The notes beneath the pieces were generated by a model. The model did no database searches. It had not been told where the DNA came from and was given only the letters and a program-made list of their open reading frames with translations. From NCBI GenBank assembly GCA_048013815.1, contig CM106586.1, forward strand, positions 13,764,001 through 13,828,000: a stretch of DNA of 64,000 nt. The letters run 5' to 3'. Below, piece after piece: positions 25,232-50,041 of this stretch (the first letter of the stretch is position 1; each line of letters opens with the position of its first letter). Both the position numbers and the translations under genes were made by a program. The DNA comes from Setoptus koraiensis. Lineage: Eukaryota > Animalia > Arthropoda.

Positions 25232-26698
25232 TTAGTCGTATTCACCAGTATCGCGTGTTTTGCAAAACATGTAAACCACAGCTGCAAGAATAACGCCCAG
25301 AAGAACAACCAAAGCTATCAAACCACCTTTGCCAAGACCCAGGAAATGATGAGAATGGTGAGCGACGTGGGTGGAAGCTTGATTGGCTACAGGCATGGGA
25401 TGACCTAAAGTATAGCCTATAACGCCATGGCCTACAACAGAGCCGAATTGAACTTCACCCTCGGGGTCATCCTGATCTTCCGCCAACGATCGCCTAATTG
25501 ATTCGTCGAGAACATTGACTTTGAATATTTGGGAAACTGCGAGTTCGGCCCTGCTACCCAAGCGTCTCTGCAGCCATCCGGTAACTCCGCCTGCTTGCGT
25601 GTAACACTCGATATCTGCATCGAACGAGTTGAAATTTTCAGTTTGCTCGAATTTGTGCACCGGTCGCCTCATTTTTTTTGTCTTGTCCAGGTTGACAGTG
25701 AATAAATTTTCGTCATTCAACATCCCTTGGTCCATTTTTTCCCTTACATCTTCCTCTAAATCGACTTTGGCTTCTATGAGCAGAACGCCCTGACAGAATT
25801 GAACGGCTTCGATCCATTTCTGGACCCTCGGATCGCTGCTCAGACTTCTATCTAAGCTTTCAGCATCGTTTCGGGCCAAATATCCTTTCCAGGCCAACCG
25901 AGAAATCGTGTATATCGAGCTCTGTGCGAATTGTTCAATGAGGTTGCACGCTTTTCTGGTTGCTACAAACTCGTCTACCATACTCTGTGTATTCAATGTC
26001 ATAGCCATGGAAAACTCGGAATCTTGTGTGGGTTTCAGTGATTCAGTGAGTATGAGATTTTCTACTTTTGTAAACACATTTGGGGTGTATTTCATGGCAA
26101 TACTCAGTAGCTTGCGCGTGCTTTTAGAAAGATCCTTGATCTGGCTCTCATCAAGTTTTGTCTTTTTCGCCTCTGACATGGCAATCACTCTGTCTAGACT
26201 TTCCACTAAATCAGAATTACTATTCTCTGCCGATTGTAGTTTCTCCGCCAAAGATTTCTTACAAGTCAGAGCAACTTGGCCTGCTAGAAGTCGGAAAAAG
26301 CGAGCCAATCTATTCCTCTGTATACGTTTGAGGTATTTACCATGACTGGCATTGGCTTTCAACTGTTTGTGAAATTGCAACAATTCATCTGCAAAGTCGG
26401 GCTCGCACACAGAATGACGTGTGCCGGCTTGTTGGACAATTTCCTTCAACGCCCGGATATCATCGAAACCATTTACACTGCGAATACACCTGTTGAGAAT
26501 CGCACTTTTTTCCTCGCTCAATCCATCCGTGTTATCGTTTTCGAGCGCTATCTCTGTGAACTGCAGAAATGCAGGAATCGTCTCGGTTGCTTTCACCGAG
26601 GAAACGCATCCCTCTTTGCTGATAGCTTCGACGTCAGAAGAGTAAATTAAACAAGCACATATCACGTAGACAATAGCGAGCAGTTTCAGTTGAGCCAT
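25232..26698 (-). CDS. Orphan type I membrane protein, family member 1 (488 aa)
   Basis: Intronless ORF with signal peptide, Cys-containing helical ectodomain, DPEGEVQFG motif, His-rich stretch and C-terminal TM helix (GLIALVVLLGVILAAVVYMF). It aligns by eye with 43239 and 48431. Confidence 0.9.
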   Translation of the reverse strand: MAQLKLLAIVYVICACLIYSSDVEAISKEGCVSSVKATETIPAFLQFTEIALENDNTDGLSEEKSAILNRCIRSVNGFDDIRALKEIVQQAGTRHSVCEPDFADELLQFHKQLKANASHGKYLKRIQRNRLARFFRLLAGQVALTCKKSLAEKLQSAENSNSDLVESLDRVIAMSEAKKTKLDESQIKDLSKSTRKLLSIAMKYTPNVFTKVENLILTESLKPTQDSEFSMAMTLNTQSMVDEFVATRKACNLIEQFAQSSIYTISRLAWKGYLARNDAESLDRSLSSDPRVQKWIEAVQFCQGVLLIEAKVDLEEDVREKMDQGMLNDENLFTVNLDKTKKMRRPVHKFEQTENFNSFDADIECYTQAGGVTGWLQRRLGSRAELAVSQIFKVNVLDESIRRSLAEDQDDPEGEVQFGSVVGHGVIGYTLGHPMPVANQASTHVAHHSHHFLGLGKGGLIALVVLLGVILAAVVYMFCKTRDTGEYD

Positions 26699-28030
26699 TT
26701 TGCTGTTATGCTTTCAGAGCTTCTTATTTTTATATTCGATACAATTTCTGGTCACAAATTAACTGGAAATGACCTTTCTCTATGACTTGAATTTTGTTAG
26801 AATTTGTTGGGAAAATACTTATCATCCAAAGGAAGCTTACTTTTCTAGTTGCAATAACTGATGCTTCGAGGTTCATATATGTCGCTATTTATACTAGAGA
26901 TTGAGAAGCTCACTACCTTTTAAAGTTGTGATTGGAAGTCTATTTTTAAATGGTATCTGGAATTCCAATACAAAACTTTGGAAATGTTTTTCTTGTGCTA
27001 CTTGAAAATCTCCTCCCTAGTGAAATAACTAAGGAGTCGAGGTTCGTACCTGTCACTATTTACACTCCAGATTGAGAAGCTCGTTTCATTTTTGAACTGG
27101 TATTGGTATTTCGATATCAAATTTTGAACGCCATCATGAGAGTGTCAGGTGCCAAGAGGCATCCTGCGACTGACGAATCCTCTTTGATCCTAGTTATGAA
27201 AATTTCGTTTAAATCGTCCTCAATAAAATTCATGGGTTTAAACCATTTGGGCACACTAATCTTCACTCAGTTCCCTTTTTCTCAGATGAGCCACATTGCT
27301 GTGACAAGCGGTCTGTTTGAGATTCGACGACAGATGAAATTCTTTGGCGTACCAATTTTCGACTTGATCATCGTACGTCTCTATGTTCCAAAGAACGTTC
27401 CTGTCCTTTGATCATTGCACTGAAACTAATTACTCTGGACTACAAAATCGGTTCAAAACGCTCCACAACGAGTTGAGATCAAGTCCTGATAAATTGCCGG
27501 GCAATATAACACGACTAAATAATCTTGAACTACATCATTCATCCCTTATCGATAATGATGGACAAAACATATCCTATTTTGTTGTTCATACAAATGACCA
27601 ACATACATGTAAAAACCTCAGGAGCAATGCTGATGACTTGGGAGAGACACATTATTGGAATTGATAGAAGCAGGTTTATTCGGAATAGATAGCGACACTT
27701 CTTATTTCGGAGTTCCCATCTGCAATATCATAGGAGGCTTCTGTGGGTAAATTCTATGTGTATTTTTTTCGATAACCCATTAGCAATGCAGCAATTCTCT
27801 GCAAATTGGAATGTCCGAGAAGTTTATCATTATTTGTACAGCTTCTCATCGGTATCGAGATTAAGGATCGAAAAGATAGGGCCATGCTCTGAACCTACTT
27901 TCTGTCTCTTCCGACCATTCAAATTTGCGTGCGTGGGGCAGATCAATTAATGTCCCAATAATTAGTCGACATATTATTGCAATATGAATAAAACTGCAGA
28001 ATAAAATGGTGCAATGGGCTCGCTACTAGT

Positions 28031-28391
28031 GATAGTCTCGTGTCATGGATACAAAATCCACCAAAGGCGATAACAAAACACAGCAAAACTTGCTGTTGTG
28101 ACATTCTGCTTACTATTTATAATCCGATTCCAACGTCACCAGATGTTCGAGAATTGATGAAAAAGTGCTGGCCGCCTTTCGATCGATCTATAAATCTTGT
28201 CCAATGATAAAACACACTATATCTAGAAGCATCTATTTCTACAAACAGTTACCTGAAGCCATTCCCCCCACCCTTTGTGCTATATTCGCCTCTGAAACAT
28301 CGTTATTATGATCCATCGAACTCACTACATTCTCTCTCTCTCTCTCTCCATCACTGTCACCGATCATGATGTAAAAAACAGCAACTCTCGA
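28031..28391. repeat. Extra promoter copy (28031-28250, direct) plus inverted segment (28253-28391) at the duplication junction
   Basis: 28031-28250 matches about 22719-22945. 28253-28391 is the reverse complement of about 22586-22719. Confidence 0.85.
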
Positions 28392-28399
28392 ACTCTATT

Positions 28400-31300
28400 G
28401 TACTTAAGTAGAATCAAGGGAGCCTAACTGGCGTCGATGAAATGAATGATTAGTAGAGACAACCAAATCGGAGCTCATTATCAAATAATTTCAGTGAAAG
28501 CATAGGCATATACCGATGGTAATTGGATACAATCCCTCAAGAGCTGAGATGCACAGTCTATATCGTGCGATAGAATACTGGAGCATGGAGATATTACTTA
28601 TTTATGAAAAGAACGCATTTTTGATCCAACTTGCGTAGTTTGCATTGTATTGTATAGTATTGTCTTATTGTTTTTCTCCAAAATGTTTCCAACCTCGTCC
28701 ATTTGTAGCACATAATTCGGCAAAATCTACTATCTATCAAAATGTCCATGCGTCGATCACACTTATAATCGATAGTTGCTGTTTTTTACCTCATGATCGG
28801 TGACAGTGAGGGAGAGAGAGAGAGAGTTAGAGAATGTAGCGAGTTTGATGGATCATAATGACGATGTTTCAGGGACAAATAGAGCACAAAGGGGGGGGGG
28901 GAATGGCTTCAGATAGTCTCGTGTCAAGAATACAAAAACCAGCAACACAACCCACCTCACAAAACACATAGCAAAACTTGCTGTTGTGACATTCTGATTG
29001 CTATTTATAATCCTATTCCAACGTCACCGGACTTTCGAAAATTGATATAAAAGTGCTGGCCGCTTTTCGATCGATCTATAAATCGTGTCCAATGATAAAA
29101 CACACCATATCTACAAGCATCTATTTCTACAAAGAGTTATCTCTAGAAAATATTTTCCTGATAACAAAATACCACGTCAGCCAACTTGTGCAAACTAACT
29201 CGTAATCTACAATGCATATCGCAATCAAATTAACACTGATCTGCGCCATCTCGATGGTTGCATTCTCTTGTTTGGTATCGGCTGATGATGCCAGAGTACA
29301 AAAATGCCAGTCGGAGTTGTCGGACCTGCAACAATCTCTCAATGAGCTCTCTATGAAGCGACAAACTCGATTGAAGGAACAGCAGGAGCAAAAATTGCAA
29401 CAAGATATAACGGCAAAGATGGCCGAGTGTGAAAGAATAGCCCAAGGTCTTGATCAGCCGGAAGTTCAAGAGCCAGAAGTTCGAAAGCCAGAAGTTCAAG
29501 AGCCAGTGTATGAAAGGGTTAGAATGTCATGGCCATCGGATGAATGTAGATTTTTCATGGGATACGAAAATTTTGAGCATCATCAGCAAATATGCGACGA
29601 CTGTTGTAAAAAATATGACGAAGTTGGTGGGGAGATGTTCAATGAATGCCGCTGTTATCCCAAAAAGTGGAATAAATAATTAATCAAATAAATTTGTGAG
29701 ATTACGCTCTAACGATGTACAGTCATCTGCGCATGACTACAAATAATCAATGTGATACCCTGGCTACTGGAATACAATAAAACAAAATGTCCGAGTTCAC
29801 TTAAATGGCCGAACCTTACATTATCATAACGTTATGAGACAAAAATAATAGAAGGATAATAGAAAAAACTTGCAGGTATCTCTGTACGTGAAAGAGAAGT
29901 TTCACAGTCAATTGCACAGTGACTGTGAGATACTCTCGATTTTGAAATGAAAACAATTATCAGAATCAAAAGCCGTGAAAAGTATATCACATAGAAGGAG
30001 GTTTATCCTGAAGACTTTGCCTCGCCTTACCTCACAAAGACAATTAACTGTATTATTTTTTTTTGCTGGGTTGTAAATCAATTTGTGACGAGTTGTCGCG
30101 ATTAGGAGAGTATATAAACTAGATGCTCGTTCACTCATCCATTCGATAGTTCAGTCAGCCGAGATTAGCATCTCGTGCATCTTAAACTTTGATCGAAGTG
30201 ACAGCAGTTGGCACAAAATCAAAGCATAAATAGAAAAGAAATCAATCGACATGAGTTAATTCATCAGAATCTTCCTGTGCCTAGTCAGGGTAGTTCTCGC
30301 GTCATTTGTCTTGACAATATAAGCAGCAGATGTCATAGAGGAAGATCTAGCAGATATTTCATTCGATGGCTGCGTTGGAATGAGTCCGAAATGACAAAAA
30401 TGAACGACATGGGATCTACCGATTGTTGGCACTATTTGAATATCCAGTCAACCATGGTACAAAATTCTGTACCATGTCGAGGCGCCCTTCAAACCTATAA
30501 AACTATCTAAAGGATACTATTTCAACGAACATCACAAAAGCGACAAACCCAACAAAGATAGTCAGTGCAGTAGGGCAACGATGATAATCGTTATCATCGT
30601 TGGTCTTGCTGTTGTTGACGTCCTGATGTAGAATTTAAGACGGACCAAATTCAACGAAAATATGACGTCTATTGCAAAAATTTATCAGCAGTATGTATGA
30701 CGCACAAAATGTCTATCGTGAAATGAAGCATCTTGAATGTTGCTAGATTGTAAAACGATGGAGTTACCTGGTTTGTACCGGTTTCACTGTGCCGTTGGTA
30801 TTAAAGTGATATACTAACGATTACAAACTCATGTTTAATGGTGGCTCTCTTGATGGGTCGCATGTGGTTAGCATGCGCTCATTTAGGATAAATAGGTAGA
30901 TTTTGTAATAAAAGATAACATTTGTAATAGGATTCCATGAAATGAAGCCCGTCAGAATGGATAGTCAGTTTTTATTTCCCAAAGGAGCATTATAAAAAGA
31001 CGCAGCTGAGATCTAGCACCATAGCAACATAAGCCACTGTTCTCTCCTAGTATTGAGGTATTATGAGTAATCTAAAATCATTCTGACAACGTTGAAATTA
31101 ACTATACAAACGTTTGCTTCACTAAGAATATGCACCTTGTAAGCTGGTTTATTTAGATTAGTGTCAGGCACGGTGTTGTCATGTTTTGTGATGTTTATGT
31201 TAATCTGGAGTTAAATATCTATTATTGATTTTGATTATTATAGGCAAACTCTTTTTCTTGAGCGTGTTTAAGAAGCCAAGATGTCGAAACAGATCAGAGT

Positions 31301-33192
31301 CACATATTGGGTTTTTATTCTCACTATCTGGTTCCACAACAAAGAATCAGATTCAGACTATTTTGCAATGTAGAATCTAATTGGCATTTTCACATCATAA
31401 GATCTTCTATCTACATATGATGTATTCATTTGAAAAAATGAGAGAATTTAAAGTGATATACATCGTCTATCTGGATAGATCTATTACAACCACCCGAGGT
31501 CTATGCGGCCTAAATAACTGTAGACGGCAGAAAACAAGTAGAGATAGCGCTTGACCAATTTCTTCTGTGGCGCTAACATGTTGGTTGTGGTATTGTTGTT
31601 CTCTAATAGAGGATCGCTTATAGAATGTTCTAAATTTGAATTGGAATCTCCTGTATTATCCTCTAGTGTCAATAGAATTTCGCGAGCCTCACTAATATAT
31701 TTCCATTTAGATTCTGGATTGGTCGTTTGCAAAGAGCGTAGTACATTACCACTGCTGTCGTATTGAACAACTAGACCCCTATGACACACATCATTCTCCA
31801 GCAGCCAATTGTTTCGCAATATAAAACCTAGATCGCGGACTCTGTTAGAGCGTAAAATATTGTCACCTAGCCACTCAACGATTCGGCCAATCAGAGATAT
31901 TGACTTCAATGTCATACGTGCCACATTTGGATGTTTCAAAAGAAAATCGGTCATGTCAAATCGATTACCGTCGCTTAGGGCACAAGCACAGGCAACCCAA
32001 TAGGTCTCTTGATCAACGTCGGCCCCTCGTTTTATATTGTCGGGCCAGCCTGCAACCGTAGCCCAAAATTCGGACTGGCCCGCTTTCTCTCCACGTATGT
32101 AATGTTTTATAATTCTCGCATGACCTATGTCCACTATGAGTAAGGCTGGTGTCGTATCCATTAACGTTATACCATTGGGGAAAACCATTTTTCGCTCATC
32201 CACAATGTCACCATTGTCCTCACTGTAGCTAAACGTAGTATTTGTGTCCGCATTCAATTGATCTCCATACCTCGAATAGAAGTCCGCTTGTTTGTATCGA
32301 ACAGGTGTAATTGAGTCCAACACGCTCAATTGTTGAGTGCCTGTGTCAAACCGCAATATTCGTCCAGTGTCATCGTTTTCCAACAATGACAACGAGCATT
32401 CTCGCAATGGCCATTTATTACTAGCGTCTGTCATGTAAATAACGTCTCCATGTGTTGCCCCTCGGAACCAGTCAACAGCCAGATCATCTAACATGACAAT
32501 GCGCGACTGGTTAGTGTGCCCAAGTGATTTGTGGCGTTGTTTTGCGTCAATCAATAGTGTCGCCGGTTGCAACTGGTCACTCTCTTTTGTTGGTTGATCG
32601 GATGCTGTAGTAGCGGCCATTGAGGGATCCCATTTAGACAGATCAACACGGAACAGGCCGTTTAGTGGATCAACGACATATAAGTGATGCTCGTCAGGTG
32701 ACAATCGCAATCCTAGTGGGCGCGAACAGCGCGATATTATGATATTTGTGGGTGAATATTGGGCTTGCTCGCCGTAAAAGCGAACGTCTGAATCGCAATG
32801 GTGAAAATTGGTCGCTGTTTCGGACGTTGTTGCATCCATATGGTCACTTTGATTGGCTTGATAAATGGTCGATGGGCTATTCAACATGGCCACCACAGTG
32901 GTCGTGTTTCGTCTCGAATCTACATACAATATAAAACCACCTTCAACTCCCGTGTAAAAGTTGCCCGACAAATCCTCTGCCGACGCTTCCGGCGATCTGA
33001 TTTGGCCCTCAAATAATATCTCGGCGCTGTCCAATTCATCTGAGAATTGATTAGGAAATGAGGCCTTCTCATAGAAACGACGGGGGTCAAAACTGGGCTC
33101 GAATGGTGGCTGAGGCATATAATAGATGAGCAAACCAAATAAAGTTTTGCTTATGAGGAACCATATGAGAAAGCGAAATACGTTACAATAGG
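28400..33192. repeat. Right copy of segmental duplication, beginning with the last codons and 3' region of HPS1
   Basis: GTACTTAAGTAGAATCAAGGGAGCCTAA at 28400 is identical to the HPS1 3' end at 22229-22256. Confidence 0.9.
29212..29679 (+). CDS. Small secreted Cys-rich protein, paralogue B (155 aa)
   Basis: Same signal peptide and C-terminal Cys domain as 23016..23471, with a divergent middle segment. Confidence 0.85.
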   Translation: MHIAIKLTLICAISMVAFSCLVSADDARVQKCQSELSDLQQSLNELSMKRQTRLKEQQEQKLQQDITAKMAECERIAQGLDQPEVQEPEVRKPEVQEPVYERVRMSWPSDECRFFMGYENFEHHQQICDDCCKKYDEVGGEMFNECRCYPKKWNK

Positions 33193-33382
33193 GCGATTTG
33201 CATTCGCCATCGTCAGTATAACTGTCATTCTTTTTTTGTTTTTCTTTGCTGACACTTCTTTCCTTTGCCGACATATCTACCGTTCTATTGTTTAGGCGCT
33301 CATTTTTCGCCTTCATCGCCAAAGCTTTTGCTCCTGTCATCTGGAATTTATCCTTCGAATGCTTTTCTGTACACACACACAC
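31484..33382 (-). CDS. APMAP: Adipocyte plasma membrane-associated protein / hemomucin / strictosidine synthase-like beta-propeller protein
   Basis: N-terminal TM anchor (FRFLIWFLISKTLFGLLIYY). Family motifs SPEASAEDLSGNFYTGVEGG, CSRPLGLR, DDLAV, YMTDASNKW, GRILRFD, FPNGI and GWPDNIKR. The true start is probably a Met downstream of 33382. Confidence 0.92.
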   Translation of the reverse strand: MCVCTEKHSKDKFQMTGAKALAMKAKNERLNNRTVDMSAKERSVSKEKQKKNDSYTDDGECKSPYCNVFRFLIWFLISKTLFGLLIYYMPQPPFEPSFDPRRFYEKASFPNQFSDELDSAEILFEGQIRSPEASAEDLSGNFYTGVEGGFILYVDSRRNTTTVVAMLNSPSTIYQANQSDHMDATTSETATNFHHCDSDVRFYGEQAQYSPTNIIISRCSRPLGLRLSPDEHHLYVVDPLNGLFRVDLSKWDPSMAATTASDQPTKESDQLQPATLLIDAKQRHKSLGHTNQSRIVMLDDLAVDWFRGATHGDVIYMTDASNKWPLRECSLSLLENDDTGRILRFDTGTQQLSVLDSITPVRYKQADFYSRYGDQLNADTNTTFSYSEDNGDIVDERKMVFPNGITLMDTTPALLIVDIGHARIIKHYIRGEKAGQSEFWATVAGWPDNIKRGADVDQETYWVACACALSDGNRFDMTDFLLKHPNVARMTLKSISLIGRIVEWLGDNILRSNRVRDLGFILRNNWLLENDVCHRGLVVQYDSSGNVLRSLQTTNPESKWKYISEAREILLTLEDNTGDSNSNLEHSISDPLLENNNTTTNMLAPQKKLVKRYLYLFSAVYSYLGRIDLGWL

Positions 33383-33952
33383 ACATATATACTGAAAATT
33401 GTCTATATGGTAATAATTTCTTACGTTACTTGTTTGATGAGTCGAATAGCCTAAGGTGACACTAATCTGAAATCATATCTAGTGTTCATTTAGTAGTACA
33501 TCCACTGATTGGTATAGCGCATTTTTGTAGAGTGCCGGCGGAAAAGATTTTATCGGTCTAAAATAAACTCAGCTGTTTCGTGGCCTCTCTTTGTCTCTAG
33601 TGTCTCTTGTCCCAGATCTGATTTTCTCGCATATGTTAGCGCGTATGTGTCAAGCTGGCCGACGATCGACGTTCAATAGCTGAGATGTCTGTGTACTCTA
33701 TGTATTTCACACTCTATTCATTTGTGTTGTGATGCTTCGCGGTTGTTGTTTTCTGCATAGATCAAAATGGAATGGTGATGTTTGTCTAGACACATGAGAA
33801 CAAGATTACTGTATACAATAAGAAGATTTTCTTCCAACACAATCTATTCAGCTATCTACTTTTGCTTCCATACACTATCTGATCATAAAAAATCCCATTA
33901 CTATCACTGGGAATTAACTAGTGCCGAATAGTTAGTTAGAATTATGATCTCA

Positions 33953-34111
33953 TCATCTCTTATCACCATCTCTAGTCTTTACTATATACTCGAAATGCAT
34001 ATTGTACCCACAATACAACTTTCTACTTTTGCGCATGTAACCAGAGTATTTAGCACTGACTAAAATAGCGAAAATAGTAAAGACGACGAAAGTAAAAACA
34101 CGCGCTAACAT
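33953..34111 (-). CDS. Candidate 52-aa secreted basic peptide
   Basis: MLARVFTFVVFTIFAILVSA looks like a signal peptide and is followed by KYSGYMRKSRKLYCGYNMHFEYIVKTRDGDKR. No homology recognised. Confidence 0.3.
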   Translation of the reverse strand: MLARVFTFVVFTIFAILVSAKYSGYMRKSRKLYCGYNMHFEYIVKTRDGDKR

Positions 34112-35471
34112 TTGACAATAAATGGTAAGCTCATGCCTTTTTCTTGTCTGTTTTCGACTGTTCAATGCGAGTCAATCGATTTTGTTCTCTAAGTTTGGTA
34201 CATTGAATTGGCAATGGAAATTAGATAATAGAAGTGTTGCCACCAATGATTGTTGATCTTCATCAGGTTTCCGATGTGCGTGTGACAAGTTTAGCCGTCG
34301 CTCGCTCAACTGAGCTACCGGTTAACTAAATAGAGAGTTTCGACTTATCGCAACTTTATAAATCAAATGTTATTGCACACAAAGCGGAATAAATTAATTA
34401 GATAAAACCCGTTTGCGCGTCTGTCGCACTTATATCACGAAAATCGCTTGATAAAGTATCTACACAGTAAAGAGCGAAAGGCATTTTAACGTGCTCAACC
34501 AAGCTAGGTGCTTCTAGAGAACTAAAATCTCCATTGTATAAATGTGATGAATCTAATTAAATATCCCAATTGAGGTTGCTACCTGAACATATGAGCTTCT
34601 ATGTGATAGATGCGATGTTGCGGTAGAACATCCATCACTAAATCACCAGTTGGCTAATTCTCAAATCAGGCGTTAATCATATTCGTTCATGAATATTGCC
34701 ATACTAAAGGATGTGAGATAAATCAAATTGATAACAACAACTATTAGATAGATCGGATTTATTCAAGTTCATAAACTCTTAAACTGGGCTAGTTTAGCAA
34801 GCTAGATTGCTTAGCTGTCGTTATTCAAAGCAGCAGTTGATCCGAACAAATAGCCAGTTTTCAAGGAGAACCTATGGATTAACTGATAGTAGTAGGCTCA
34901 CAACGCCATTGAATGCCAGGGAGTCGCACAAAGGTGATGGTTGCTCAACATGAAATAGGATAAGAAATCGCTATTTCCGGGTGTTGAAAGTTACACGATT
35001 TTTGTGCATGTTTGTTCAAGAGAAAAAAACAATGAATAATTGCAATTGCTTTGGCTGCCTCAAAACAATGGCATATTAATTTAATTTGTTTAGTTTTAAA
35101 TAAATCTCATTGTCAATTATGATAAATAGCTACTTGATCGACCAAGGCATTAGATATTTTCACCCTCTTTGAGTATGAAAACAATGCATTTGGTCTTCTT
35201 ATCGGATAATATATACACCCTATTTAGTCGGAAGGAAAAGAGATCTCACTGGATAGCACGAGTCTACATTTACAGGCACAATATCATAAAGGTATATTGA
35301 TCAAATCATGGTATGAATCACTCATCTGACTAATGTTGACTAAAGTAAATCTGCATCTCATTCATTCGGTGCTTGATTTGTTCGAGGATTTGCCGGAGCA
35401 AATTGTCCTTACCTCCCGGCTCTCGCAGGGGGCAGAGGACCTGCCCACCTCACCAGATCACAAGTGATTGG

Positions 35472-35754
35472 TAGTGTTGCGGAGCGATCACGAGCCCCGA
35501 TTCTCTTCTATTTCGACCATTGAGGAAAGGGGCAGAAAGTCGAGTTTCTGCCACTTTCTGCCGGATTATAAACCATTTCTGCCGTTTCTGCCAAATAAAA
35601 GAAATAGCAGAAATGGCAGAAAGTACATACATACATATATTTTAAACTATTGAGATTCTATCGGCACACTAGGTTGATGTAATGTGACGATTTCATCCGA
35701 CTTCACGGATGCGGAGAAACCCCACTCGGAGCGAGAGATCGCTCCACAACACTG
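35472..35754. mobile_element. Old hAT-type MITE (283 bp)
   Basis: TIRs TAGTGTTGCGGAGCGATC / GATCGCTCCACAACACTG; flanks GTGATTGG / GGGATTGC (6/8 match, degenerate 8-bp TSD); internal TTTCTGCC/GGCAGAAA repeats. Confidence 0.7.
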
Positions 35755-37143: not shown

Positions 37144-37202
37144 TGAGCACGGATCATCCACGGACTGATCGAAAATTCTGGAAAATCACGGATATCCATG
37201 AA

Positions 37203-39404: not shown

Positions 39405-41350
39405 AAAGCGCAACTCACTAGAAAAATATGTACGTTCCTAAATAAGGGTACCGAAAGTTCACACTGCCGGTGGCAAGAATAAAATCGATATCAATTGAAT
39501 AGCGAAAAACGAGGTCAGCTCTCAATTGATTATAATAATAAATTCAAGTGCGCTGCAAAAAAAAAACAAGGTTCTTTAGATCACTTTGCAGTGGTACTGT
39601 AATATCGTCGAAAATGTTATTTACGTGACTTACTGGCGCTTTGTGGATGAACTAGCATTCAGAACTTCTGAATCAGAAGGGTCAGACTGTCACACGCTAG
39701 CATTTCGAATATGCGATTATTTCATGATATGTATTAGCATGCGATTATCGATTCTCCAAGTTTGCTTCCATGGAAATGAACTAAATGATCCCTTTTATTG
39801 TGCTATAGTTACGGGAGCCAGTCGAAAAGCCGTCGATTGTTGAATTTTCAAATATTCAATGGTTGAAAATTACATTGTCCAACAATAAAAGTCGACTATT
39901 GAATAGTCGAAATTATGCATTTCGAATGGTAATGATTTGGATCATATAAAAAAAAAACTCGTGCTATTCTATTATTCTAATCACTTGGTTCAGAAGTGAA
40001 CCCTAGCTGAACGATGTATTGATGACCGGCTGCATATGAGTCAGTCACGCGGATATAAACTAAGATCATGAGTATGACTAGCTGAATAAATACATGTAAT
40101 TGGATTCATCACGCAAACGCCCATCACCAAAATTAGATCCCAAGTTTTGGTGCTCGACTCAGTTGGTGAATCTAGGTTTGGCTAAAAAGATATAAACAAT
40201 TCATGAAATGCTTCTATTTAAAGGGTGCGTGTGATGCTCGACTAACTCATTCCGGCTATTCTCAATCAATCAGAGGACTTACTTTCATTTACACTGGTTG
40301 TAGTAGTTGATGTCCCAACTGAGGACTTTCTCATAACTGTGAATATGCAGCGAAGCGCTCAAAATATCTCACCAAGCTGACAGCAATTCATAGTTCTGGT
40401 GTGCATTGTGGTCTCCAGTTAAGTGGGAAAATTTCTAAGAATGACAAGAAACTCTCTGATCTTAGGTCTATTCTCAACGAGAGCCTGATTGTATTTAATT
40501 CTATTCGTAGCCAGGTTCTTTAGAATATGATTGGAGCACTAGGAGCTGATCTAATGAGAGATTAAACCCATTAACGAGGCGTGTGTGCATGTGGATAGAC
40601 CGTTCAATGTCTGCAATGACGCAATAACTGGAGGTCAACTCTTTGCTATGCCTGCTTCGGTTGAAAGTAGTCTAACAATGATGTAAGGCAGTTCTGCGAC
40701 ATCTCAGTAACTACAGCTGTAGTAACTCAAAGTTACGTAAGCTAGCTACATCTGTAGCTACATGTAGACACTAACATTGCTATTGTTGTGAGATCAAGTG
40801 CACCAATGACGACGTCTCTCAAGGTCAATCTTTTATTTTCGTTGCCTGTCATGTGAGTGAATCCTATTATATTGCAATGGGATTCTGAATTAATTGTGTA
40901 CTTTGTTCAACATAATTTGAATATTGTCTTTACATCTGATACAGATTTTATCTGCAAGTAACAGACGAACAAGCGGACAAATATACTTCATGTGATTGAT
41001 TATATCAGCATAATAATTAGTACTATATTTGTAGTGTCGACAGAATATATCGGCGGAGAATCACCTGAGCTGACAGATACAACGATATGATGGAGTGTTT
41101 ATGATATTTACAGGAGATTATTAGACGACAGCAAGACAATTGCACCATATTACAGAATCTCTAAATAGTAAATAGATAGCTATTTATCGAAATAAAGCGA
41201 GCAGCCATATTGCCAGAGCAACAAAATCAATGTCACTGTAAAACTCGGCCTATTCAATTAGGATTCATTAGTTATCATCTATATATTTATATATCACTAT
41301 CTATTTATTTATAAAACTAAATTTACTAATCGTCAATTTCGGCCCCCATA

Positions 41351-42202
41351 ATGACCACTGAAAATAAGATACATAAGCTGAAACGCAAGGAACTGGTGGT
41401 GTTTGATTTCGACGATACCCTCGTTGACTGCAACTCAGACACTTGGATTCATCAGTTGGCCCCAGAGAAAACTATCCCAAAAAAACTGTTGTACAGAGAG
41501 GGACAAGATTACTTGGAGCACGTGCAAAAGGTTTTGGATTATTTGCACTCGGAAAAAGTCTCAAAGCAAGACTATATTTCTTGTTTGAGTAAGATGCCCC
41601 AAGTAGATCATATGATTGATACATTGGTTGGAAATTTGGCCAAGCATAGAGATAAATACGATATGATCATTCTGAGTGATGCCAATTCGTTTTTTATATC
41701 AACATTCTTGGAGGCACGGTCTGTTTCGGATTATTTCTCGGCAATACTCACCAACTCAAGCATTTTCAACGACGATGGCCAATTAATATTGAAGGGCTAT
41801 CATGTTCAAGAATTTTGTCCCATTAGCTCCCGTAATTTGTGTAAAGGCGACGCCTTAAAGGATTTCATAGGAAAACAAATGCTATATCACAACACTGTTT
41901 ACACCTGCATTAGTTATGTTGGTGATGGCGAAAATGATTTGTGTCCCAGTACAAAGCTCAGTAACAAAGACAGAATATTTCCTCGAAAAAATTTCCCATT
42001 GCACAGATTGTGCTCTAAACTCAAGCTAAGCCCCACGGATTCTAATGGACACTCATCAGAACGAATAAGAGATGAACTCAATACAATAGTAGCCAGTCTC
42101 AAGTCACCGGTGTTTCCGTGGACCAACGGAAAAGACATACTCGAAATCATTATGCCTAATATGTCGGAGGACAAAAATAACAATGATATCGGAAATGAAT
42201 GA
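41351..42202 (+). CDS. PHOSPHO2: HAD-superfamily phosphatase, PHOSPHO1/PHOSPHO2 (pyridoxal phosphate / phosphoethanolamine phosphatase) family
   Basis: Motif I VVFDFDDTLVDCNSD, ILSDANSFFI, NLCKG and YVGDGENDLCP. PHOSPHO1 versus PHOSPHO2 orthology cannot be resolved by eye. Confidence 0.92.
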   Translation: MTTENKIHKLKRKELVVFDFDDTLVDCNSDTWIHQLAPEKTIPKKLLYREGQDYLEHVQKVLDYLHSEKVSKQDYISCLSKMPQVDHMIDTLVGNLAKHRDKYDMIILSDANSFFISTFLEARSVSDYFSAILTNSSIFNDDGQLILKGYHVQEFCPISSRNLCKGDALKDFIGKQMLYHNTVYTCISYVGDGENDLCPSTKLSNKDRIFPRKNFPLHRLCSKLKLSPTDSNGHSSERIRDELNTIVASLKSPVFPWTNGKDILEIIMPNMSEDKNNNDIGNE

Positions 42203-42719
42203 TCGTATAAGTATAAATATAAAATTATATGTTATGTTCTTCGTCATATAGTATATGTCGCATTTAAATAAATAAATAAAGCACTAGCTTTCGGTTGTAA
42301 ATCTATTTGAATGACTCCATTAAATTGTTGCCACTGGCAACTTGCCAGTCATGGAAAAATAATCGACTGGCTTTGGCGCCAAAAAATCATCACAGTGGCA
42401 AAAAGATTGTTTTTTCCACTGGATTCCAGAAAATATGAATAGAATCTTTCCACTGAATCCATCCAATAGAACAGTCAAAAGTGTTTTTTCACATATTGCA
42501 ACCCATATTGCGAGCGACAACTTCGGATTAGAAATTGCAATTTATTGGCGTTGTACCGGGATTTTCCGGGAAAGTGAATAGTGTTTTCTTGCTCCCCAGA
42601 AACAGCCGAGTTCAACCAGCTACATGGAATGTTGATCGGCGTGTCGGGCAAAGGAAGGTTTCCTTGTTAGTCATTCTAGGTGTATATTGACAGAAGAAAA
42701 TTGAATATTTGAGGCCCCA

Positions 42720-42855
42720 GATGAATCGCACGGTGGCAGTATTTATCTGCACACTAATTTTATAATACACCTTCGGTGAATGTGATGGCGATCTGAGATG
42801 CAACACCTATGCTGGCGGTCTTAAAGGATGACTATTGCAGCGAATTGGTGAACAT
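42720..42855 (+). pseudogene. Fragment of orphan membrane family (C-terminal ectodomain part)
   Basis: Translates FGECDGDLRCNTYAGGLKG*LLQRIGE versus FAELDGDLTCYTYTGGLSGWLIKQMGE in 43239; Trp is replaced by TGA. Confidence 0.75.
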
Positions 42856-42857
42856 TC

Positions 42858-42980
42858 GATTTCTTCTTGCACGCGTTTGTCATCTTCTAAACTGACATCA
42901 ACACTGTTAGTTTCCTCTTTAGCCAAATAGCCTCTCCATGCTAGCCTGGATATTGTATAGATAGGATTTTGAGCATAGGA
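42858..42980 (-). pseudogene. Fragment of orphan membrane family (middle part), opposite orientation
   Basis: Translates SYAQNPIYTISRLAWRGYLAKEETNSVDVSLEDDKRVQE versus YAQNSVYTIAKLAWRGFLASDEKNSVNSSLDEDERVQK. Confidence 0.8.
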
Positions 42981-43238
42981 ATAGCTATTTTAGAGTTCCA
43001 ATTTTTACATTGTCGGTTGTTTCCGCTGAAAGAGACTCATGATCCTCCTATCATAATCATTCATAGGATTCGGCTAAAAATAACTCATCAATAAAATGTC
43101 GCATGCAGAAAATGTTAATTTGGCACAATATCTGTCATATCTAAATATTGAAAAAACTATAGACCTCAGTGAGATATTCATCTCTTCAAGTGCGTAACTG
43201 ACTGACTTCAGCTCAAATTAAGATTTTCGCAGACAAAA

Positions 43239-44798
43239 ATGATGCAATTCAATGAGACGTTGTTATTTGGTTGCCTGATTTTCTTCATCAGCCTGTTGTG
43301 CTCGAGAATCAATGCTGCAGAGCCCGATGAATGGACCAAAGAAAAATGCAGAGAAACTTTCAGGAACATTGTCACTATCAAGGAGTTTCAGTTTTATGCT
43401 AACAAAATTGTAAAGGACGGGAATGACAGGAAATGGATGGACGGTGATGTAATAATGGACACTGCAGCACTGAATAGATGTATGCACAGTGTAGACGGTT
43501 ACGGTGATCTTGAAGCGCTCAAAGAAATTACTGATCAAGTTTCTAACATTCATTCAGTTTGTCAGTCGGAGTTCGCCGATCATTTGTTGGCTTTTGACAG
43601 AAGAATGCGAGACAATTTGGCCAACAACCAGATTCTCTTTTTCACAAGCAAACAAAAACATCGACTAGCTCGATTTTTCACTTTATTAGCTGGTCAGGTG
43701 GCTGTCACTTGCAAAAAGTCACTTTCGAAAAAGCTTGAATCGGCTGAAAATACAAATAGTGATTTAGTCACAAGTTTAGATCTGATCATTGAATCCGTTA
43801 CAATGAGTGTCGAAGGTCGACAACCATCACCATTGTCTGCATCTGTGAATAACAAACTTCCATTTGGCATAAATATGCTAATAGAATTGGCTTTTAGAGG
43901 AAAAACCAAACCAGTTAGCAAAGTGGAAAATTTGATATTGTTAGACTCGATGAAACCAGAACCGGAAGCTACATTGTTCATTGGTGTAACTATAAATGAT
44001 GGTGAAAAGTTTGAGGAATTTGTTAAAACAAAACGGGCTTGTCGCTTGATCGACAAATATGCTCAAAACTCAGTCTACACAATAGCCAAACTAGCTTGGA
44101 GAGGTTTTCTCGCTAGTGATGAGAAAAATAGTGTTAATAGTTCACTGGATGAGGATGAACGTGTGCAGAAATGGATTAAGGCCATTCAATATTGTCATAG
44201 TGTTCTATTGGTCAGAGCAAATTTAGATTTGGAACAAGAGCAGCAAATGCAGCTAGATAAGGATATTCTAAATGATGGCGAACAATTGATTACCATCGAC
44301 ATAGTTAGAGACATTGATCAAAAAGCAATTGACAATCACTCTAATACGGATAGTGACTCGACTGATATGAGACATGTTGGTCATATTTATGAACAAGTGG
44401 ACAGGTTTGCTGAACTAGACGGTGATCTGACATGTTACACGTATACGGGAGGCCTCAGTGGATGGCTAATTAAGCAAATGGGAGAACGATTCGTGTTAAT
44501 AAATCATATGAGAGTGAATGTAAGCGATGAATCATTCAGACGATCCTTACTAAGAGATGATCGAGATACTGAAACTGAGGTTCAATTTGGAGGCACAGCC
44601 GCAACCGTAACTAGTGGATCACATGCAACAACCTCAAGTGTTATTATGGCCCATCATCATTTTTTGTTTAGTCACCATACCGGCATATCAGTGGCAATTG
44701 GCGTTGCGAACCTTGTGCTTATCATAATTGCTGCTCTGTGTCAACTGGGGTCGCCTCCACCACCAGGAGGACGAGGAGGACTGGGAGGACCAATATGA
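43239..44798 (+). CDS. Orphan type I membrane protein, family member 2 (519 aa)
   Basis: Signal peptide; shared motifs HSVC..FAD.LL.F, RLARFF.LLAGQV..TCKKSL, KVENLIL, RVQKWI.A.Q.C and EVQFGG; His tract; TM helix; Pro/Gly tail. Confidence 0.9.
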   Translation: MMQFNETLLFGCLIFFISLLCSRINAAEPDEWTKEKCRETFRNIVTIKEFQFYANKIVKDGNDRKWMDGDVIMDTAALNRCMHSVDGYGDLEALKEITDQVSNIHSVCQSEFADHLLAFDRRMRDNLANNQILFFTSKQKHRLARFFTLLAGQVAVTCKKSLSKKLESAENTNSDLVTSLDLIIESVTMSVEGRQPSPLSASVNNKLPFGINMLIELAFRGKTKPVSKVENLILLDSMKPEPEATLFIGVTINDGEKFEEFVKTKRACRLIDKYAQNSVYTIAKLAWRGFLASDEKNSVNSSLDEDERVQKWIKAIQYCHSVLLVRANLDLEQEQQMQLDKDILNDGEQLITIDIVRDIDQKAIDNHSNTDSDSTDMRHVGHIYEQVDRFAELDGDLTCYTYTGGLSGWLIKQMGERFVLINHMRVNVSDESFRRSLLRDDRDTETEVQFGGTAATVTSGSHATTSSVIMAHHHFLFSHHTGISVAIGVANLVLIIIAALCQLGSPPPPGGRGGLGGPI

Positions 44799-45555
44799 CC
44801 TAAAGTAGATTACCTTAGAATGAAGGGTTTTCACTGCGGAGACATTCATGAGATAGATGCCAATGGATATTCGTCTACAATGGCCACTAGCCAACGAGAA
44901 CACGAAGCGTTCTCGTTGTTTACATATTGCAAAAGAGCTTCTCATTAGAATCATTCCAATCAATTAAATTAGTGATGCAGTATATGAAATAAACGAGGCC
45001 ACTCTTAGATTAAGACAAATGAAAACAATTTATCCCCTCAGTCAGTGGACTGAGGCGGAGAGATCATAGGTCGAGGAGGTGCTGTTGATTTTCCACTCCC
45101 CAGTTCTCCTTAGTTCTCCCTCGATCTTTCAGACCTCGAGAGAAAGAGGAAAACCCCCAGAAAAAAGTATGACTGATTTCGTAACCAGTACCGTGATCAC
45201 GATCTAATAAAGTAAAGGAGTAACACATGTAAGCATCTTGTGCAACGCACGTCTGTGGAAGCGCGTGGCTAGAAGAAGAAGAAGAGTGAAAAACGGAGAC
45301 GAGACTGTCGAGTTATGTGCCAGTTTGCAATACAGTAGTTGTAATAGTGGAGCAATCAGCGAAAACCTCTTCAGATCTCACCAAATCTCTCGTCTGCTGC
45401 CGACTCAGCACGTTTCTATATTTAAAGTTGTAAATCCAAAGAGAGATCTCTCATTAGCTGAATACATTGTTATCACGTACACTTAGGTCTATCGAGTAGG
45501 CAGTTATCTTAGAACAGTTTTATTAATTTATTGACCAGCGCATCATTTACAAACA

Positions 45556-47769
45556 ATGGATCTTTTCGAAATGTTGCCGTCGGAGCTGTTGCTCAGGATC
45601 CTCAGTTATTTGGACTTACTTGATCGATACAATTTAGCCCAAATGTCACAAAGATTGAGCGAGTTAATTCATGATACCAACAGATTTCAAGACGGGTTCG
45701 CTCTCAGTAGCCCCCGATCGGAGCTTCTAGATTGTCAAGTGTTGGAGCCAATTCTTCGTGAGCTGCCAAAAATAAGACGGCTCGACCTGAGCTATGCGAT
45801 CAGAAGATATGTGCCGAGTTCTCATTCCTATCTCATGGATAACTGCAGCTTATTAACCACACTTAATTTGAGTGGCTCATCATTCGCAGCCAACGAGCTC
45901 ACTATGATGCTACGGCCTTTACGACATTTGACGGCGCTCGCACTGGATCATGTCGAGCTAGATGACCCGAATGAATTAAACTTAGCCTTGCCGAACATAT
46001 TCGACAAGCTGTTGCATCTCAGCATAATGGGAATCAAACGAAAACGTTTCCGCGAAGGCGACATCAGAGGATGCATGCTGCGTTCGCTAGATATCAGGAG
46101 GAGTTTCATAGTTGGTGATCCCGACGAACTTGAACACGAGGACGTATGGAGTTGTGAAGAAGCAAACCTTTTTCTGCTCGGTTGTCCACGATTGGAGAGC
46201 CTAGCGTTGACAGTGAAACAAGAGGAGTGGGGGAGCGCTTTTCTTAGCCGTATCTCTCAGCCGCATCATCCCGCGTATACTCGATTGCGCACTCTTGTTC
46301 TTGATCAATGCTACGACGATAATTTGTCATGTGACTTGATGACAATTATTAGCGGCGAACAAGCTGAATTACAGTATGAAAAAAGCACCACTCGCGCCAA
46401 CAAACTTAAAAAAATTACCTGCCCAAAAGCGATACGTGATTTGGAGAATCGTGTGTTGTCAATTTACAATGATTATTGGCTGCCAGAGTATCAACAACAA
46501 ATATTCACCGTGCGATGGAAGCGAGAATTTCGCCATAATATAAATTTTCTCATAGCGTTGCTAGATCGCCGCATACTGGACAATTCGTTCGCAAGAAAAA
46601 TCCATCATTTCAATGATATGCAAATGGTTGAATACGACTGCGTGGGTGATAGAAAGCTGTGGTCAGTCACAGGAATGCCTATATGCCTGAATAATGAGCG
46701 ATTTTTATATTTGAAATTTGAGATAGAAGAATTCTCGTCAGTGAAAAGCGGCATGGCGAAATCAGGCAATTACTTGGTGACCAACAAGAGTCTCGAGCGG
46801 TTCTATCAGGACTCGATCGAGAGGCTAAAAAGAAACATAAGACGCATTGCCGGCGATGCATTGTTGCGTGAAATTATCCAGAAAAGTTGTGGACACGGAA
46901 AAGTCGTGTGTAACTTAGATTCCAATAACCCGCTGAGACCACGTGAGTACGCAAACATACGCACGGCGAACGAGGCCATTAGATCGGCAGTATTCAATCG
47001 AATCACTCTATTGGAGGCACCAGGACAAGAGACGAACAGGATAAAGTCTATCGTGTCATTGGCAACTTATTTATTCAGGACAATACCATGCCTTCCTATA
47101 GAGCCTTGTAGCTCAAAACTATTGATATGCGCAGGTAGTGCCGGTTCGCTCGAGGCTATCGCAAATAAAATCCGCGAATTGGAGGAGTGGACTGACATGG
47201 ATTGGACTGACAATTGGAGTGATTTGTGTGGGTTTAATGCGAATGTGAGAATATTCAGCTCCGACTCTCAGCCGCGACAATCATCTCGTTCCTATTCTGA
47301 TATTTCCATTGATGAAGATATTATTTTTAATATTTCTGATGATGATGACTATGAGGAATGTCACTGTGAGGAGGTCAATGTGGAAAATTTGAGAATCGAC
47401 ACGAGAGATCTAAAAGTCGATGTAGAAGAAAGAAGAATGTTTGGACGCATGTCGTGTACAAGGCGAATTTTCCTCGATGATTTTGGTACCGTTAGAACTA
47501 AGTGCAACGTGATTTTATGCACTTTTCAAGATGCACTCAAATTGTCGGCGTGGAGCAAACTGTTAATCGATTCTTTAATACTTTACGAATGTAACGAGTT
47601 CATTATGTCTGATGTGCATCTGTTATTTCATTTTTTACCCAGACGGACAGTACTTGTGTCCGACAGTAATAAGGAAGACGCTGTATTTACTAGTTTCAAA
47701 AAGATGGGCTTCAAGCCTATATTGCTGAATGATATTTGTTATAGCAAAGACGACATAATAAATATTTAA
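45556..47769 (+). CDS. F-box + leucine-rich-repeat protein with C-terminal degenerate Upf1/NAM7-like (SF1B) helicase domain (737 aa)
   Basis: F-box LFEMLPSELLLRILSYLDLLDRYNLAQMSQRL; LRRs IRRLDLSY, LTTLNLSGS, LTALALDHV, LESLALT and LRTLVLDQC; C-terminal ordered helicase-like motifs (see findings). Confidence 0.85.
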   Translation: MDLFEMLPSELLLRILSYLDLLDRYNLAQMSQRLSELIHDTNRFQDGFALSSPRSELLDCQVLEPILRELPKIRRLDLSYAIRRYVPSSHSYLMDNCSLLTTLNLSGSSFAANELTMMLRPLRHLTALALDHVELDDPNELNLALPNIFDKLLHLSIMGIKRKRFREGDIRGCMLRSLDIRRSFIVGDPDELEHEDVWSCEEANLFLLGCPRLESLALTVKQEEWGSAFLSRISQPHHPAYTRLRTLVLDQCYDDNLSCDLMTIISGEQAELQYEKSTTRANKLKKITCPKAIRDLENRVLSIYNDYWLPEYQQQIFTVRWKREFRHNINFLIALLDRRILDNSFARKIHHFNDMQMVEYDCVGDRKLWSVTGMPICLNNERFLYLKFEIEEFSSVKSGMAKSGNYLVTNKSLERFYQDSIERLKRNIRRIAGDALLREIIQKSCGHGKVVCNLDSNNPLRPREYANIRTANEAIRSAVFNRITLLEAPGQETNRIKSIVSLATYLFRTIPCLPIEPCSSKLLICAGSAGSLEAIANKIRELEEWTDMDWTDNWSDLCGFNANVRIFSSDSQPRQSSRSYSDISIDEDIIFNISDDDDYEECHCEEVNVENLRIDTRDLKVDVEERRMFGRMSCTRRIFLDDFGTVRTKCNVILCTFQDALKLSAWSKLLIDSLILYECNEFIMSDVHLLFHFLPRRTVLVSDSNKEDAVFTSFKKMGFKPILLNDICYSKDDIINI

Positions 47770-47899
47770 TCATTGTAAGTTTAAGTCGTACCGACTCGGT
47801 CATTGAATCAATTAAATTGATTGTTTCAATTATTCAGGATTAGTTGTACGTGTTGTCGATGTTAGTTGTTGCAAAACTGTTGTGTTCTTGTGCACGCAA

Positions 47900-48200
47900 A
47901 TGATCGCTCTAGTCCCTCCAAAGCCGAATCTGAGGCATTTTCCTTCGGGGATGTGTATCTGATAGCAAGAGATTGCATGATATATTCTTTATTGGCGACA
48001 GTAGTACATGGAACGCTCGCCCACTCGTTTGAATAGCCATCCATTAAAACCGCCAGCACAGGAGTAGCATTCCAGTTCGCCATCCATCGCATCAGAAGTG
48101 TACGAGCTTTCATAAATTTGAGTATTATTATTGTTTTTTTCTTCATCTATTCTAACCAAATCGATAATGGGAGATTGATCATTGGGTACCATCTGTGAGT
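47900..48200 (-). pseudogene. Decayed 3' fragment of orphan membrane family
   Basis: IIDLVRIDEE...DAMDGELECYSCAGGFNGWLFKRVGE versus TIDLSRIDEE...DELDSDLVCYTYANGLKGWLLNQLGD in 48431; frameshifted afterwards. Confidence 0.75.
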
Positions 48201-48430
48201 TTTAAAATAGGGTAGAGAAAGGTAGCCCGAGGTGATGCATAGAGGAAAAATTTTCGGTAACAAACCAGGACGACTAGTTTAACTAATCGGAGCATAGCAT
48301 AGTGAATTCAAATTCATATCGATCCAATATCTTCAATAGTTTGCTAGGGGTCAAACTTTATTTTATTATTCTCATTCTGGCATGGTCGAAGCACGGGATG
48401 AATGAACTATTACTATTGGACTAACTATTA

Positions 48431-50041
48431 CTAATAGAATCCCCTCGGAAATCTACCATTGTCTGTATAACACCAGTAACTCAAGAAAAATGCGGCAATT
48501 ATCGCAATGAATACGGATCCCATGCACAGACTAGTGATTATACCTACTTCAGCACCGTGCGAGCCGCCAAGATAGTGATGGTGATGGGCTGCAGCAGTTG
48601 CAAGGTGAGCCCCGGTTGTTGATGTTGCCATCGTTGCCGCAGTGCCGCCAAATTGCACCTCACCCTCGGGATCTTGATAGTCCTGGAACAGCGATTGTTT
48701 GAACGATTCGTCTTTCACATTCACATGAATATATCTCGTTATTAGAAGATCACCCAATTGATTTAATAGCCACCCTTTAAGACCGTTCGCATAAGTGTAG
48801 CATACCAGATCGCTATCTAGTTCATCGAAAATATCTCGCTGTTCAAAGATGTAAATAGATTGATTTTCACTCGAATTGTCTGTTTCTTCATCAATTCTGC
48901 TCAGATCAATTGTGACCAATTGCTCATGATGATCCGAAACATCTCTATTCAGCTTCAATAACGGTCCTTGCTCCACGTCGAGATGCATATCGAGCAATAA
49001 AACGCTCTGGCAATATTGGACGGCTTTTATCCACTTTTGCACACGTTCATTGCCGTCCAGACTTATATCGACACTATTCGATTCATCTCTAGCAAGATAA
49101 CCTTTCCACGCCAGTCTGGGTATTGTATAGACAGAGTTTTGTGCATAAGACTCGATCAGATCGCAAGCCTGTCTGGTTTTCGAGAATGCATCAAATTTAT
49201 CCATGTCATTTACTGTAACACCAAGATAGAATGCAGCTTCCGGTTCCGGTTTCATCGATTCTAACAGTATGATATTTTCTACTCTGTTGAATAACTTTAC
49301 TTTACTCTTTAGAATCAAGTCCAGTAGAAAATTTATGCTAGCCGAAAGTTTTCCATTCAGTTCGGCGGAAACTGCTGATCTCGATTCATCTCTCGCATCT
49401 GCAACATTGAGAATCAATTCAATGCTATCCACTAATCTGCTATTATTCCTTTCGATCTCTTCCAGCTTTTGAGCAAGCGACTTCTTGCATGTGAGAATCA
49501 CTTGACCGGCGAACAAACTAAAAAAACGAGATAGCCTATGCTTTTGTTTACTCGTAAAAAAGAGTATCTTATTGTGTAATATATTCTCTTTCATTCTCCT
49601 GTCGAATTTTAACAATTCATCGGCGAAGTCTTTTTGGCATACCGAATTGATACGTGAAGAATGATCGACGATTTCTTTCAGCTTCCTAAGATCACCATGA
49701 CCATCAATACTGTGCATGCATCTATCCAATGTTGCTCTTTCTATCTTCACATCTTCAGTAGTAAATATTACTTGCTCGTCTTCATCGAAATTCTCCTTAC
49801 CTGACAAAAGATGTTGCAGATGTTGTGTGGATTCTACATCATCTTTTATAAGTTTGCTAGCATAGAACTGAAAATCTTTGATTGTGCGGATGCTTCGGAA
49901 CGCCTCTCTGCATTTTTCTTTTGTCCATAGTTCTGGTTCCGAAGTGAGGGCGCCAGTGGGGAACAAGCTAATGCAGACTATGCAAACAAATAATGCGACT
50001 TCAGTTGTGTACTTCATTGTAGAACTCGAAGAAATCTTCAT
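48431..50041 (-). CDS. Orphan type I membrane protein, family member 3 (536 aa)
   Basis: Signal peptide (the second Met, MKYTTEVALFVCIVCISLFPTGA, is the likely start), family motifs, AHHHH tract, TM helix and short tail. Confidence 0.9.
   Translation of the reverse strand: MKISSSSTMKYTTEVALFVCIVCISLFPTGALTSEPELWTKEKCREAFRSIRTIKDFQFYASKLIKDDVESTQHLQHLLSGKENFDEDEQVIFTTEDVKIERATLDRCMHSIDGHGDLRKLKEIVDHSSRINSVCQKDFADELLKFDRRMKENILHNKILFFTSKQKHRLSRFFSLFAGQVILTCKKSLAQKLEEIERNNSRLVDSIELILNVADARDESRSAVSAELNGKLSASINFLLDLILKSKVKLFNRVENIILLESMKPEPEAAFYLGVTVNDMDKFDAFSKTRQACDLIESYAQNSVYTIPRLAWKGYLARDESNSVDISLDGNERVQKWIKAVQYCQSVLLLDMHLDVEQGPLLKLNRDVSDHHEQLVTIDLSRIDEETDNSSENQSIYIFEQRDIFDELDSDLVCYTYANGLKGWLLNQLGDLLITRYIHVNVKDESFKQSLFQDYQDPEGEVQFGGTAATMATSTTGAHLATAAAHHHHYLGGSHGAEVGIITSLCMGSVFIAIIAAFFLSYWCYTDNGRFPRGFY

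Follow-up and report, generated by a model that had tools for sequence, protein, structure and literature searches.

Three intronless genes, here termed A, B, and C, lie in a 64,000-nucleotide stretch of the genome of the eriophyoid mite Setoptus koraiensis (the window hereafter; GenBank assembly GCA_048013815.1, contig CM106586.1, positions 13,764,001 to 13,828,000 of the forward strand), and they are real, selectively maintained members of a large mite-lineage family of orphan proteins, some anchored as type I membrane proteins and others secreted. The assembly, which was obtained from mites from Pinus koraiensis, consists of two chromosomes with an N50 of 24.53 Mb, and its annotation lists 5,954 genes predicted without RNA-seq (PMC11920263). 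An original prediction had proposed three related genes and some decayed copies at this locus, and direct translation recovered all three as stop-free open reading frames (ORFs) at exactly the proposed coordinates (Table 1). Such long intronless ORFs are consistent with a published account of introns having been lost in eriophyoids (PMC7738191).

The three proteins can be aligned over their full lengths, with 40-41% identity between A and either B or C and approximately 53% between B and C, and this alignment contains every conserved motif block that had been listed in the prediction. Each protein begins with a hydrophobic leader and carries a single C-terminal hydrophobic segment followed by a polar tail of 10-18 amino acids (aa), while a Gly/Ala/Thr/His-rich stretch separates the conserved (E/D)VQFGG motif from the transmembrane segment; hydropathy and AlphaFold modeling thus agree on the common architecture that had been proposed, namely a signal peptide, a helical Cys-containing ectodomain, a His-rich spacer, one transmembrane helix, and a short tail. 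These traits extend well beyond the window, as the His-rich spacer was found in 41 of 42 long family members (the interval from (E/D)VQFGG to the transmembrane helix containing 6 His on average) and the polar tail, ranging from 5 to 50 aa, in all 42. None of the 42 ends in the hydrophobic extreme C-terminus, devoid of a polar tail, that would signify glycosylphosphatidylinositol anchoring, as assessed by hydropathy rather than with a dedicated predictor. The closest paralogue of gene A lies at C2:3.187 Mb (89% aa identity), that of gene B on the other chromosome at C1:7.817 Mb (77%), and that of gene C at C2:13.866 Mb (locus L006; 87%, with 94% nucleotide identity over the ectodomain). The last of these falls within a cluster of genes at C2:13.856-13.870 Mb, approximately 28 kb past the window, whose full-length similarity to the window genes is significant (E 1e-84 to 1e-155).

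Table 1. Features of the window (window coordinates) and tandem clusters of the family (coordinates on chromosomes C1 and C2)
Feature	Position	Strand	Description
Gene A	25232-26698	-	488 aa; six-Cys helical ectodomain, His-rich spacer, transmembrane helix 25265-25321, 10-aa tail
Gene B	43239-44798	+	519 aa; architecture as gene A; transmembrane helix 44685-44741; Pro/Gly-rich 18-aa tail
Gene C	48431-50041	-	536 aa; architecture as gene A; transmembrane helix 48485-48541; 17-aa tail
Pseudogene fragment Ia	42852-42980	-	42 aa of the AQ..YTI..LAW..RVQ block; stop-bounded; 62-69% identity to B/C clade members
Pseudogene fragment Ib	42769-42882	+	adjoins Ia on the opposite strand; C..Y.GG..G.L block with an in-frame stop
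Pseudogene fragment II	47911-48183	-	~90 codons, from the variable linker via CY..GG..GWL to PEG..FG.GGT
Candidate shared element TTAAAAATAG	26940-26949	-	251 bp 5' of the gene A ATG; family motif YTAWWWWTAG
YTAWWWWTAG match	50197-50206	-	upstream of gene C
Small secreted Cys-rich proteins	23016-23471 and 29212-29679	+	151 and 155 aa (86% identity); one on each side of gene A
Strictosidine-synthase-like (hemomucin-type) ORFs	23847-24575 and 31484-33382	-	one beside each Cys-rich gene
PHOSPHO1/2-type HAD phosphatase (PF06888, E 2e-61)	41351-42202	+	intronless; directly precedes fragments Ia and Ib and gene B
F-box ORF (N-terminal PF12937/PF00646)	45556-47769	+	737 aa; between genes B and C
Tandem cluster	C1:9.767-9.786 Mb
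Tandem cluster	C1:0.671-0.681 Mb
Tandem cluster	C2:7.644-7.654 Mb
Tandem cluster	C2:13.856-13.870 Mb		matches at C2:13,856,337-13,869,894

The family is far larger than its representation in the window would suggest. A six-frame search of both chromosomes (C1 and C2; 24,221,962 and 24,533,333 bp) with protein B returned 109 matches, a search with a profile of the short members returned 104, and 66 loci were read and their ORFs sorted into long, short, and fragmentary types. Approximately 45 intact long genes encode proteins of 420-574 aa with a C-terminal transmembrane segment (hydropathy > 1.9), the long-type matches totaling approximately 49 when damaged copies are included. A further ~29 intact short genes (330-390 aa) have a signal peptide, share their N-terminal ~330 residues with the long type, lack the transmembrane segment, and end soon after the domain with a short tail that is either basic or acidic. 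In all, the family amounts to approximately 75 intact genes, in addition to 20-25 fragments or stop-bearing copies, and is distributed over both chromosomes, its copies being either solitary or in tandem clusters. Querying with a distant homologue (described below) exposed still more divergent members in S. koraiensis, among them a 384-aa secreted form (L067), and eight further divergent members lie outside the set of loci read. The members proposed in the original prediction are therefore genuine, but the small local family it envisaged is in fact genome-wide, and it had overlooked this scale, the secreted subfamily without a transmembrane segment, and the distant homologues outside S. koraiensis. 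At two loci, L022 (C2:12.802 Mb) and L054 (C2:4.818 Mb), the family ORF contains N across 167 codons (~500 bases), representing either an assembly gap or withheld sequence, such that each of these copies may be intact or broken.

Across 109 aligned sequences, distant homologues included, five cysteines are invariant and one is near-invariant (C31, C71, C98, C146, C251, and C302 in gene A numbering), and few other polar residues are conserved; the six cysteines probably form three disulfides. AlphaFold modeling with 29 sequences gave a predicted local distance difference test (pLDDT) score of 61, and protein A modeled with the 109-sequence alignment reached a pLDDT of 80.5 and a predicted template-modeling score (pTM) of 0.75. 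The latter model depicts a compact bundle of ~17 helices with four predicted short strands, followed by a disordered His-rich spacer and the transmembrane helix.

That no known domain is recognizable, as had been proposed, was upheld by every search undertaken. No Pfam-A family reached its gathering cut-off in hmmscan searches with the three window proteins or with 20 database relatives, the best sub-threshold scores being T3SchapCesA at 13.7 bits (cut-off 29.1), OGFr_N at 16.9 (22), and PTEN_C2 at 20.2 (27.1). Likewise, a sequence-profile search of the PDB produced no match, VIA-align was negative, and the best hits from Foldseek against the PDB (E 0.4) and among the viral models of BFVD (E 0.2) were under the noise level for helical proteins. 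The ectodomain fold may be new. Alpha-pore-forming toxins and F-BAR proteins occupied the top Foldseek rows, and alpha-helical toxins such as ClyA, Cry6, MakA, and Nhe do share long helices with the mite proteins; kinship with either group was nevertheless rejected, as these rows represent long-helix noise with TM-scores (template-modeling scores) of approximately 0.1.

Relatives were found in other assemblies, both by word-index protein searches (3, 19, and 5 relatives) and by a full hidden Markov model (HMM) scan of 1.84 billion representatives (56 relatives). All derive from Logan, ENA, or JGI, and none bears a name, accession, or Pfam domain according to the word-index, HMM, and cluster look-ups. 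Thirteen are close (E 1e-69 to 1e-200), and among the remainder is a more distant group of proteins, ~520 aa long and built on the same plan, with a signal peptide, conserved cysteines, a '...W L.. A Q. C Q G. L' block, a transmembrane segment, and a tail of ~50 aa, which matched the mite family in profile-profile comparison with 99.9% probability (E 4e-32, 272 columns). On JGI contig Ga0268249_1000257 (L071), a gene of the distant family adjoins an intronless kinesin whose motor domain is 62-67% identical to that of an S. koraiensis kinesin, a domain too conserved for taxonomic placement. The ESM Atlas returned no usable match for the distant homologue. The family is not described in three eriophyoid genome papers (PMC7738191, PMC11879100, PMC11920263), and a wider literature search likewise yielded nothing relevant.

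Phylogenetic and substitution analyses indicate how this repertoire arose. A maximum-likelihood tree covering 74 members splits the short from the long forms with a Shimodaira-Hasegawa-like approximate likelihood ratio test (SH-aLRT) support of 99, and it places genes B and C inside an 8-member clade and gene A in another. Thirteen sequences from other species (one representative per 50% cluster), when added to this tree, interleave with at least nine S. koraiensis lineages of both formats, which implies that the family was already multi-copy in a common ancestor and has expanded since; Setoptus-only clades of up to five long copies or ~25 short copies are sister to single foreign sequences. 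The synonymous divergence (dS) of young pairs is 0.14-0.17 over the whole gene, and 0.106 over the ectodomain alone for the gene C pair. Nucleotide similarity between duplicates reaches 150-450 bp past the ORFs and points to segmental duplication at the DNA level. The last ~50 codons of gene C (48431-48590(-)), comprising the transmembrane segment and tail, are unrelated to those of L006 despite the near-identity of the two ectodomains, such that this 3' end has been replaced by exchange; family-wide, nonsynonymous divergence (dN) and dS both peak in the same region.

The ectodomain is under purifying selection. Pairwise dN/dS (omega) lies between 0.12 and 0.48 in 16 pairs, with short-type pairs at 0.12-0.43, and omega pooled over 11 young long pairs is 0.15-0.36 for most of the ectodomain and 0.49-0.73 in the signal peptide, the linker A338-350, the His-rich spacer, the transmembrane segment, and the tail, no 30-column window exceeding 1. 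Against their nearest paralogues, the ectodomains of A, B, and C have omega values of 0.25, 0.26, and 0.39, respectively, with 95% bootstrap limits (0.14-0.42, 0.19-0.37, and 0.26-0.65) that all exclude 1. Birth-and-death evolution, which had been proposed for the local genes, is supported for the family by its young DNA-level duplicates, by the at least nine lineages common to other species, and by its pseudogene debris. An evolutionary arms race, on the other hand, is not supported, because dN/dS is 0.15-0.5 and no 30-column window surpasses 1. The proposed assignment to the fast-evolving proteins of host interaction, gamete recognition, or immunity is accordingly not supported in its evolutionary premise, given that omega is 0.25-0.39 with upper bounds below 0.66 and that many lineages are kept across species; a site of action in any of these settings is not contradicted, but the signature of rapid protein change was not seen.

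The debris within the window comprises three fragments, checked by tBLASTn and direct translation, which substantiate the decayed copies that had been claimed at 42720-42980 and 47900-48200. Fragment II is interrupted by a single in-frame stop at 47989-47991, shares the strand of gene C, from whose 3' end it is separated by ~250 bp, and matches best (57%) a copy at C2:20.267 Mb. A scan of 400 bp 5' of family members genome-wide disclosed the motif YTAWWWWTAG (often TTAAAAATAG or CTAAAAATAG) at 130-260 bp before the start codon of 28 among 76 family ORFs and of none among 13 unrelated ORFs, a comparison limited by its small control set and by the common descent of many flanks; of 39 non-redundant upstream regions, 23 contain the string AAATAGA, as against 2 downstream regions. 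The motif matches the MEF2 site consensus, but this candidate could be either a MEF2-like site or a TATA-like site, in the latter case simply the TATA box of the mite.

As regards the surrounding genes, the pairs of Cys-rich and strictosidine-synthase-like genes on either side of gene A suggest that a segment was duplicated at this locus, with gene A lying within or around it. The phosphatase appears to be an ordinary housekeeping neighbor. The 242-aa strictosidine-synthase-like ORF resembles a truncated copy of the 632-aa one.

Taken together, the best explanation of these observations, to which a probability of roughly 55% is assigned, is a family produced in two formats on one helical extracellular domain that acts as a non-enzymatic binding or recognition module. 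A single, mostly alpha-helical domain of ~300 aa underlies both formats; in the long format it is followed by a C-terminal extension (CY..GG..GWL, (E/D)VQFGG), the Gly/Ala/Thr/His-rich juxtamembrane spacer, the transmembrane helix, and the 5-50-aa tail. Long forms would be displayed on the cell surface, and short forms would be released into extracellular fluid or secretions. A binding module is favored over an enzyme because no family or fold was matched and few polar residues beyond the cysteines are conserved. The long-form tails contain no recognizable signaling module, and their shortness implies that any signal would have to pass via a partner protein; the His-rich spacer may serve beside the membrane as a metal-binding or pH-sensing element. 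Diversification would proceed through gene number and not through hypermutation of single genes; members are gained by segmental duplication of DNA together with its flanks, lost by pseudogenization, and altered by swaps of their 3' ends.

Several considerations weigh against this reading. The signal peptides and transmembrane helices were called by hydropathy and AlphaFold instead of dedicated predictors; positive selection at a few sites can escape a simple pairwise window analysis; and the fold searches covered the PDB and BFVD, such that a fold relative may exist among AlphaFold DB models. The putative non-enzymatic character, moreover, has as its sole grounds the lack of hits and of a conserved constellation of catalytic-looking residues.

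Among the alternatives, a role in host-plant manipulation, with short forms serving as salivary effectors delivered into pine needle cells and long forms as surface proteins of the gland or stylet canal, would suit an obligate plant-feeding eriophyoid in which ~29 secreted paralogues without transmembrane segments occur in tandem clusters and whose ~6,000-gene genome harbors a lineage-restricted, unannotated, and expanded family; it is nevertheless considered unlikely, as over half of the intact copies are membrane-anchored, short-type omega (0.12-0.43) betrays no excess of amino-acid change, and many lineages are kept between species. Slightly more doubtful is a structural or extracellular-matrix role, wherein the proteins would be metal-cross-linked parts of cuticle, stylet, eggshell, or spermatophore and the His/Gly-rich segment would coordinate Zn or Cu. 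The high copy number befits bulk structural products and the composition of the His/Gly/Ala-rich low-complexity spacer is conserved in all but one of 42 long members, but the His-rich part spans just 30-90 aa between the folded domain and the transmembrane segment, is absent from the secreted forms, and accompanies a conserved part that is modeled as a compact globular domain and not a repeat.

An origin in envelope glycoproteins domesticated from viruses or retroelements, which would make the family a relative of type I fusion proteins, was raised by language-model look-alikes in clusters of herpes gH, baculovirus F, paramyxovirus F, and coronavirus S2, which scored 0.78-0.82 and served as leads only. 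All atlas scores fall below the meaningful level of 0.9, no Pfam viral family (Baculo_F, paramyxovirus F, and herpes gH included) was matched, and no glycoprotein appears in the top 50 of the BFVD search, the best hit of which has an E of 0.2; with both BFVD and Pfam empty, the atlas lead was dropped. Ordinary host genes in the flanks, duplicated units limited to a gene and a few hundred bp, and the misfit of secreted forms without transmembrane segments and of six-Cys globular helices to the layout of fusion proteins further render such an origin highly improbable. The least credible account is that the ORFs are non-functional, whether as a decaying repeat family or an assembly artifact. Many fragments and some stop-bearing copies do exist and the published annotation was made without RNA-seq, yet ~75 copies hold open frames of 330-570 codons, the cysteines are invariant over deep divergence, and orthologues occur in other assemblies; the selection analysis directly contradicts this account, with omega significantly below 1.

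The two-format family has several parallels. Insect odorant-binding proteins (PBP_GOBP) are, by analogy, likewise secreted and all-helical with six conserved cysteines, and they too grow by tandem duplication and undergo birth-and-death evolution under mostly purifying selection; the mite domain differs in its length (~300 versus ~120 aa), its Cys spacing, and the membrane anchoring of most members, and PF01395 was not hit by the window proteins in the Pfam scan. Lineage-specific surface and secreted families of plant-feeding mites and other parasites, such as the salivary families of spider mites, are similarly orphan, clustered, expanded, and equipped with signal peptides, although no sequence relationship between them and the S. 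koraiensis family is detectable. The genomes of eriophyoid mites are among the smallest in arthropods, and many standard gene families are missing from them through loss. An ambitious extension, which we consider unlikely, is that the six-Cys helical module represents an undescribed domain of new fold devoted to surface and soluble recognition (e.g., chemosensing, recognition of self or partner, or detection of plant molecules) that may in part replace receptors lost in genome reduction.

Annotated protein resources do not contain the family, homology-guided annotation misses it, and no solved or viral structure matches it; it therefore presents an inexpensive target for structure determination and expression mapping in mites that are pests of crops and forests. 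It will gain more than limited practical value once a tissue, ligand, or phenotype has been established. With approximately 75 intact genes among ~6,000, the family is a candidate for lineage-specific biology in these mites, be it plant feeding or manipulation, reproduction, or sensing.

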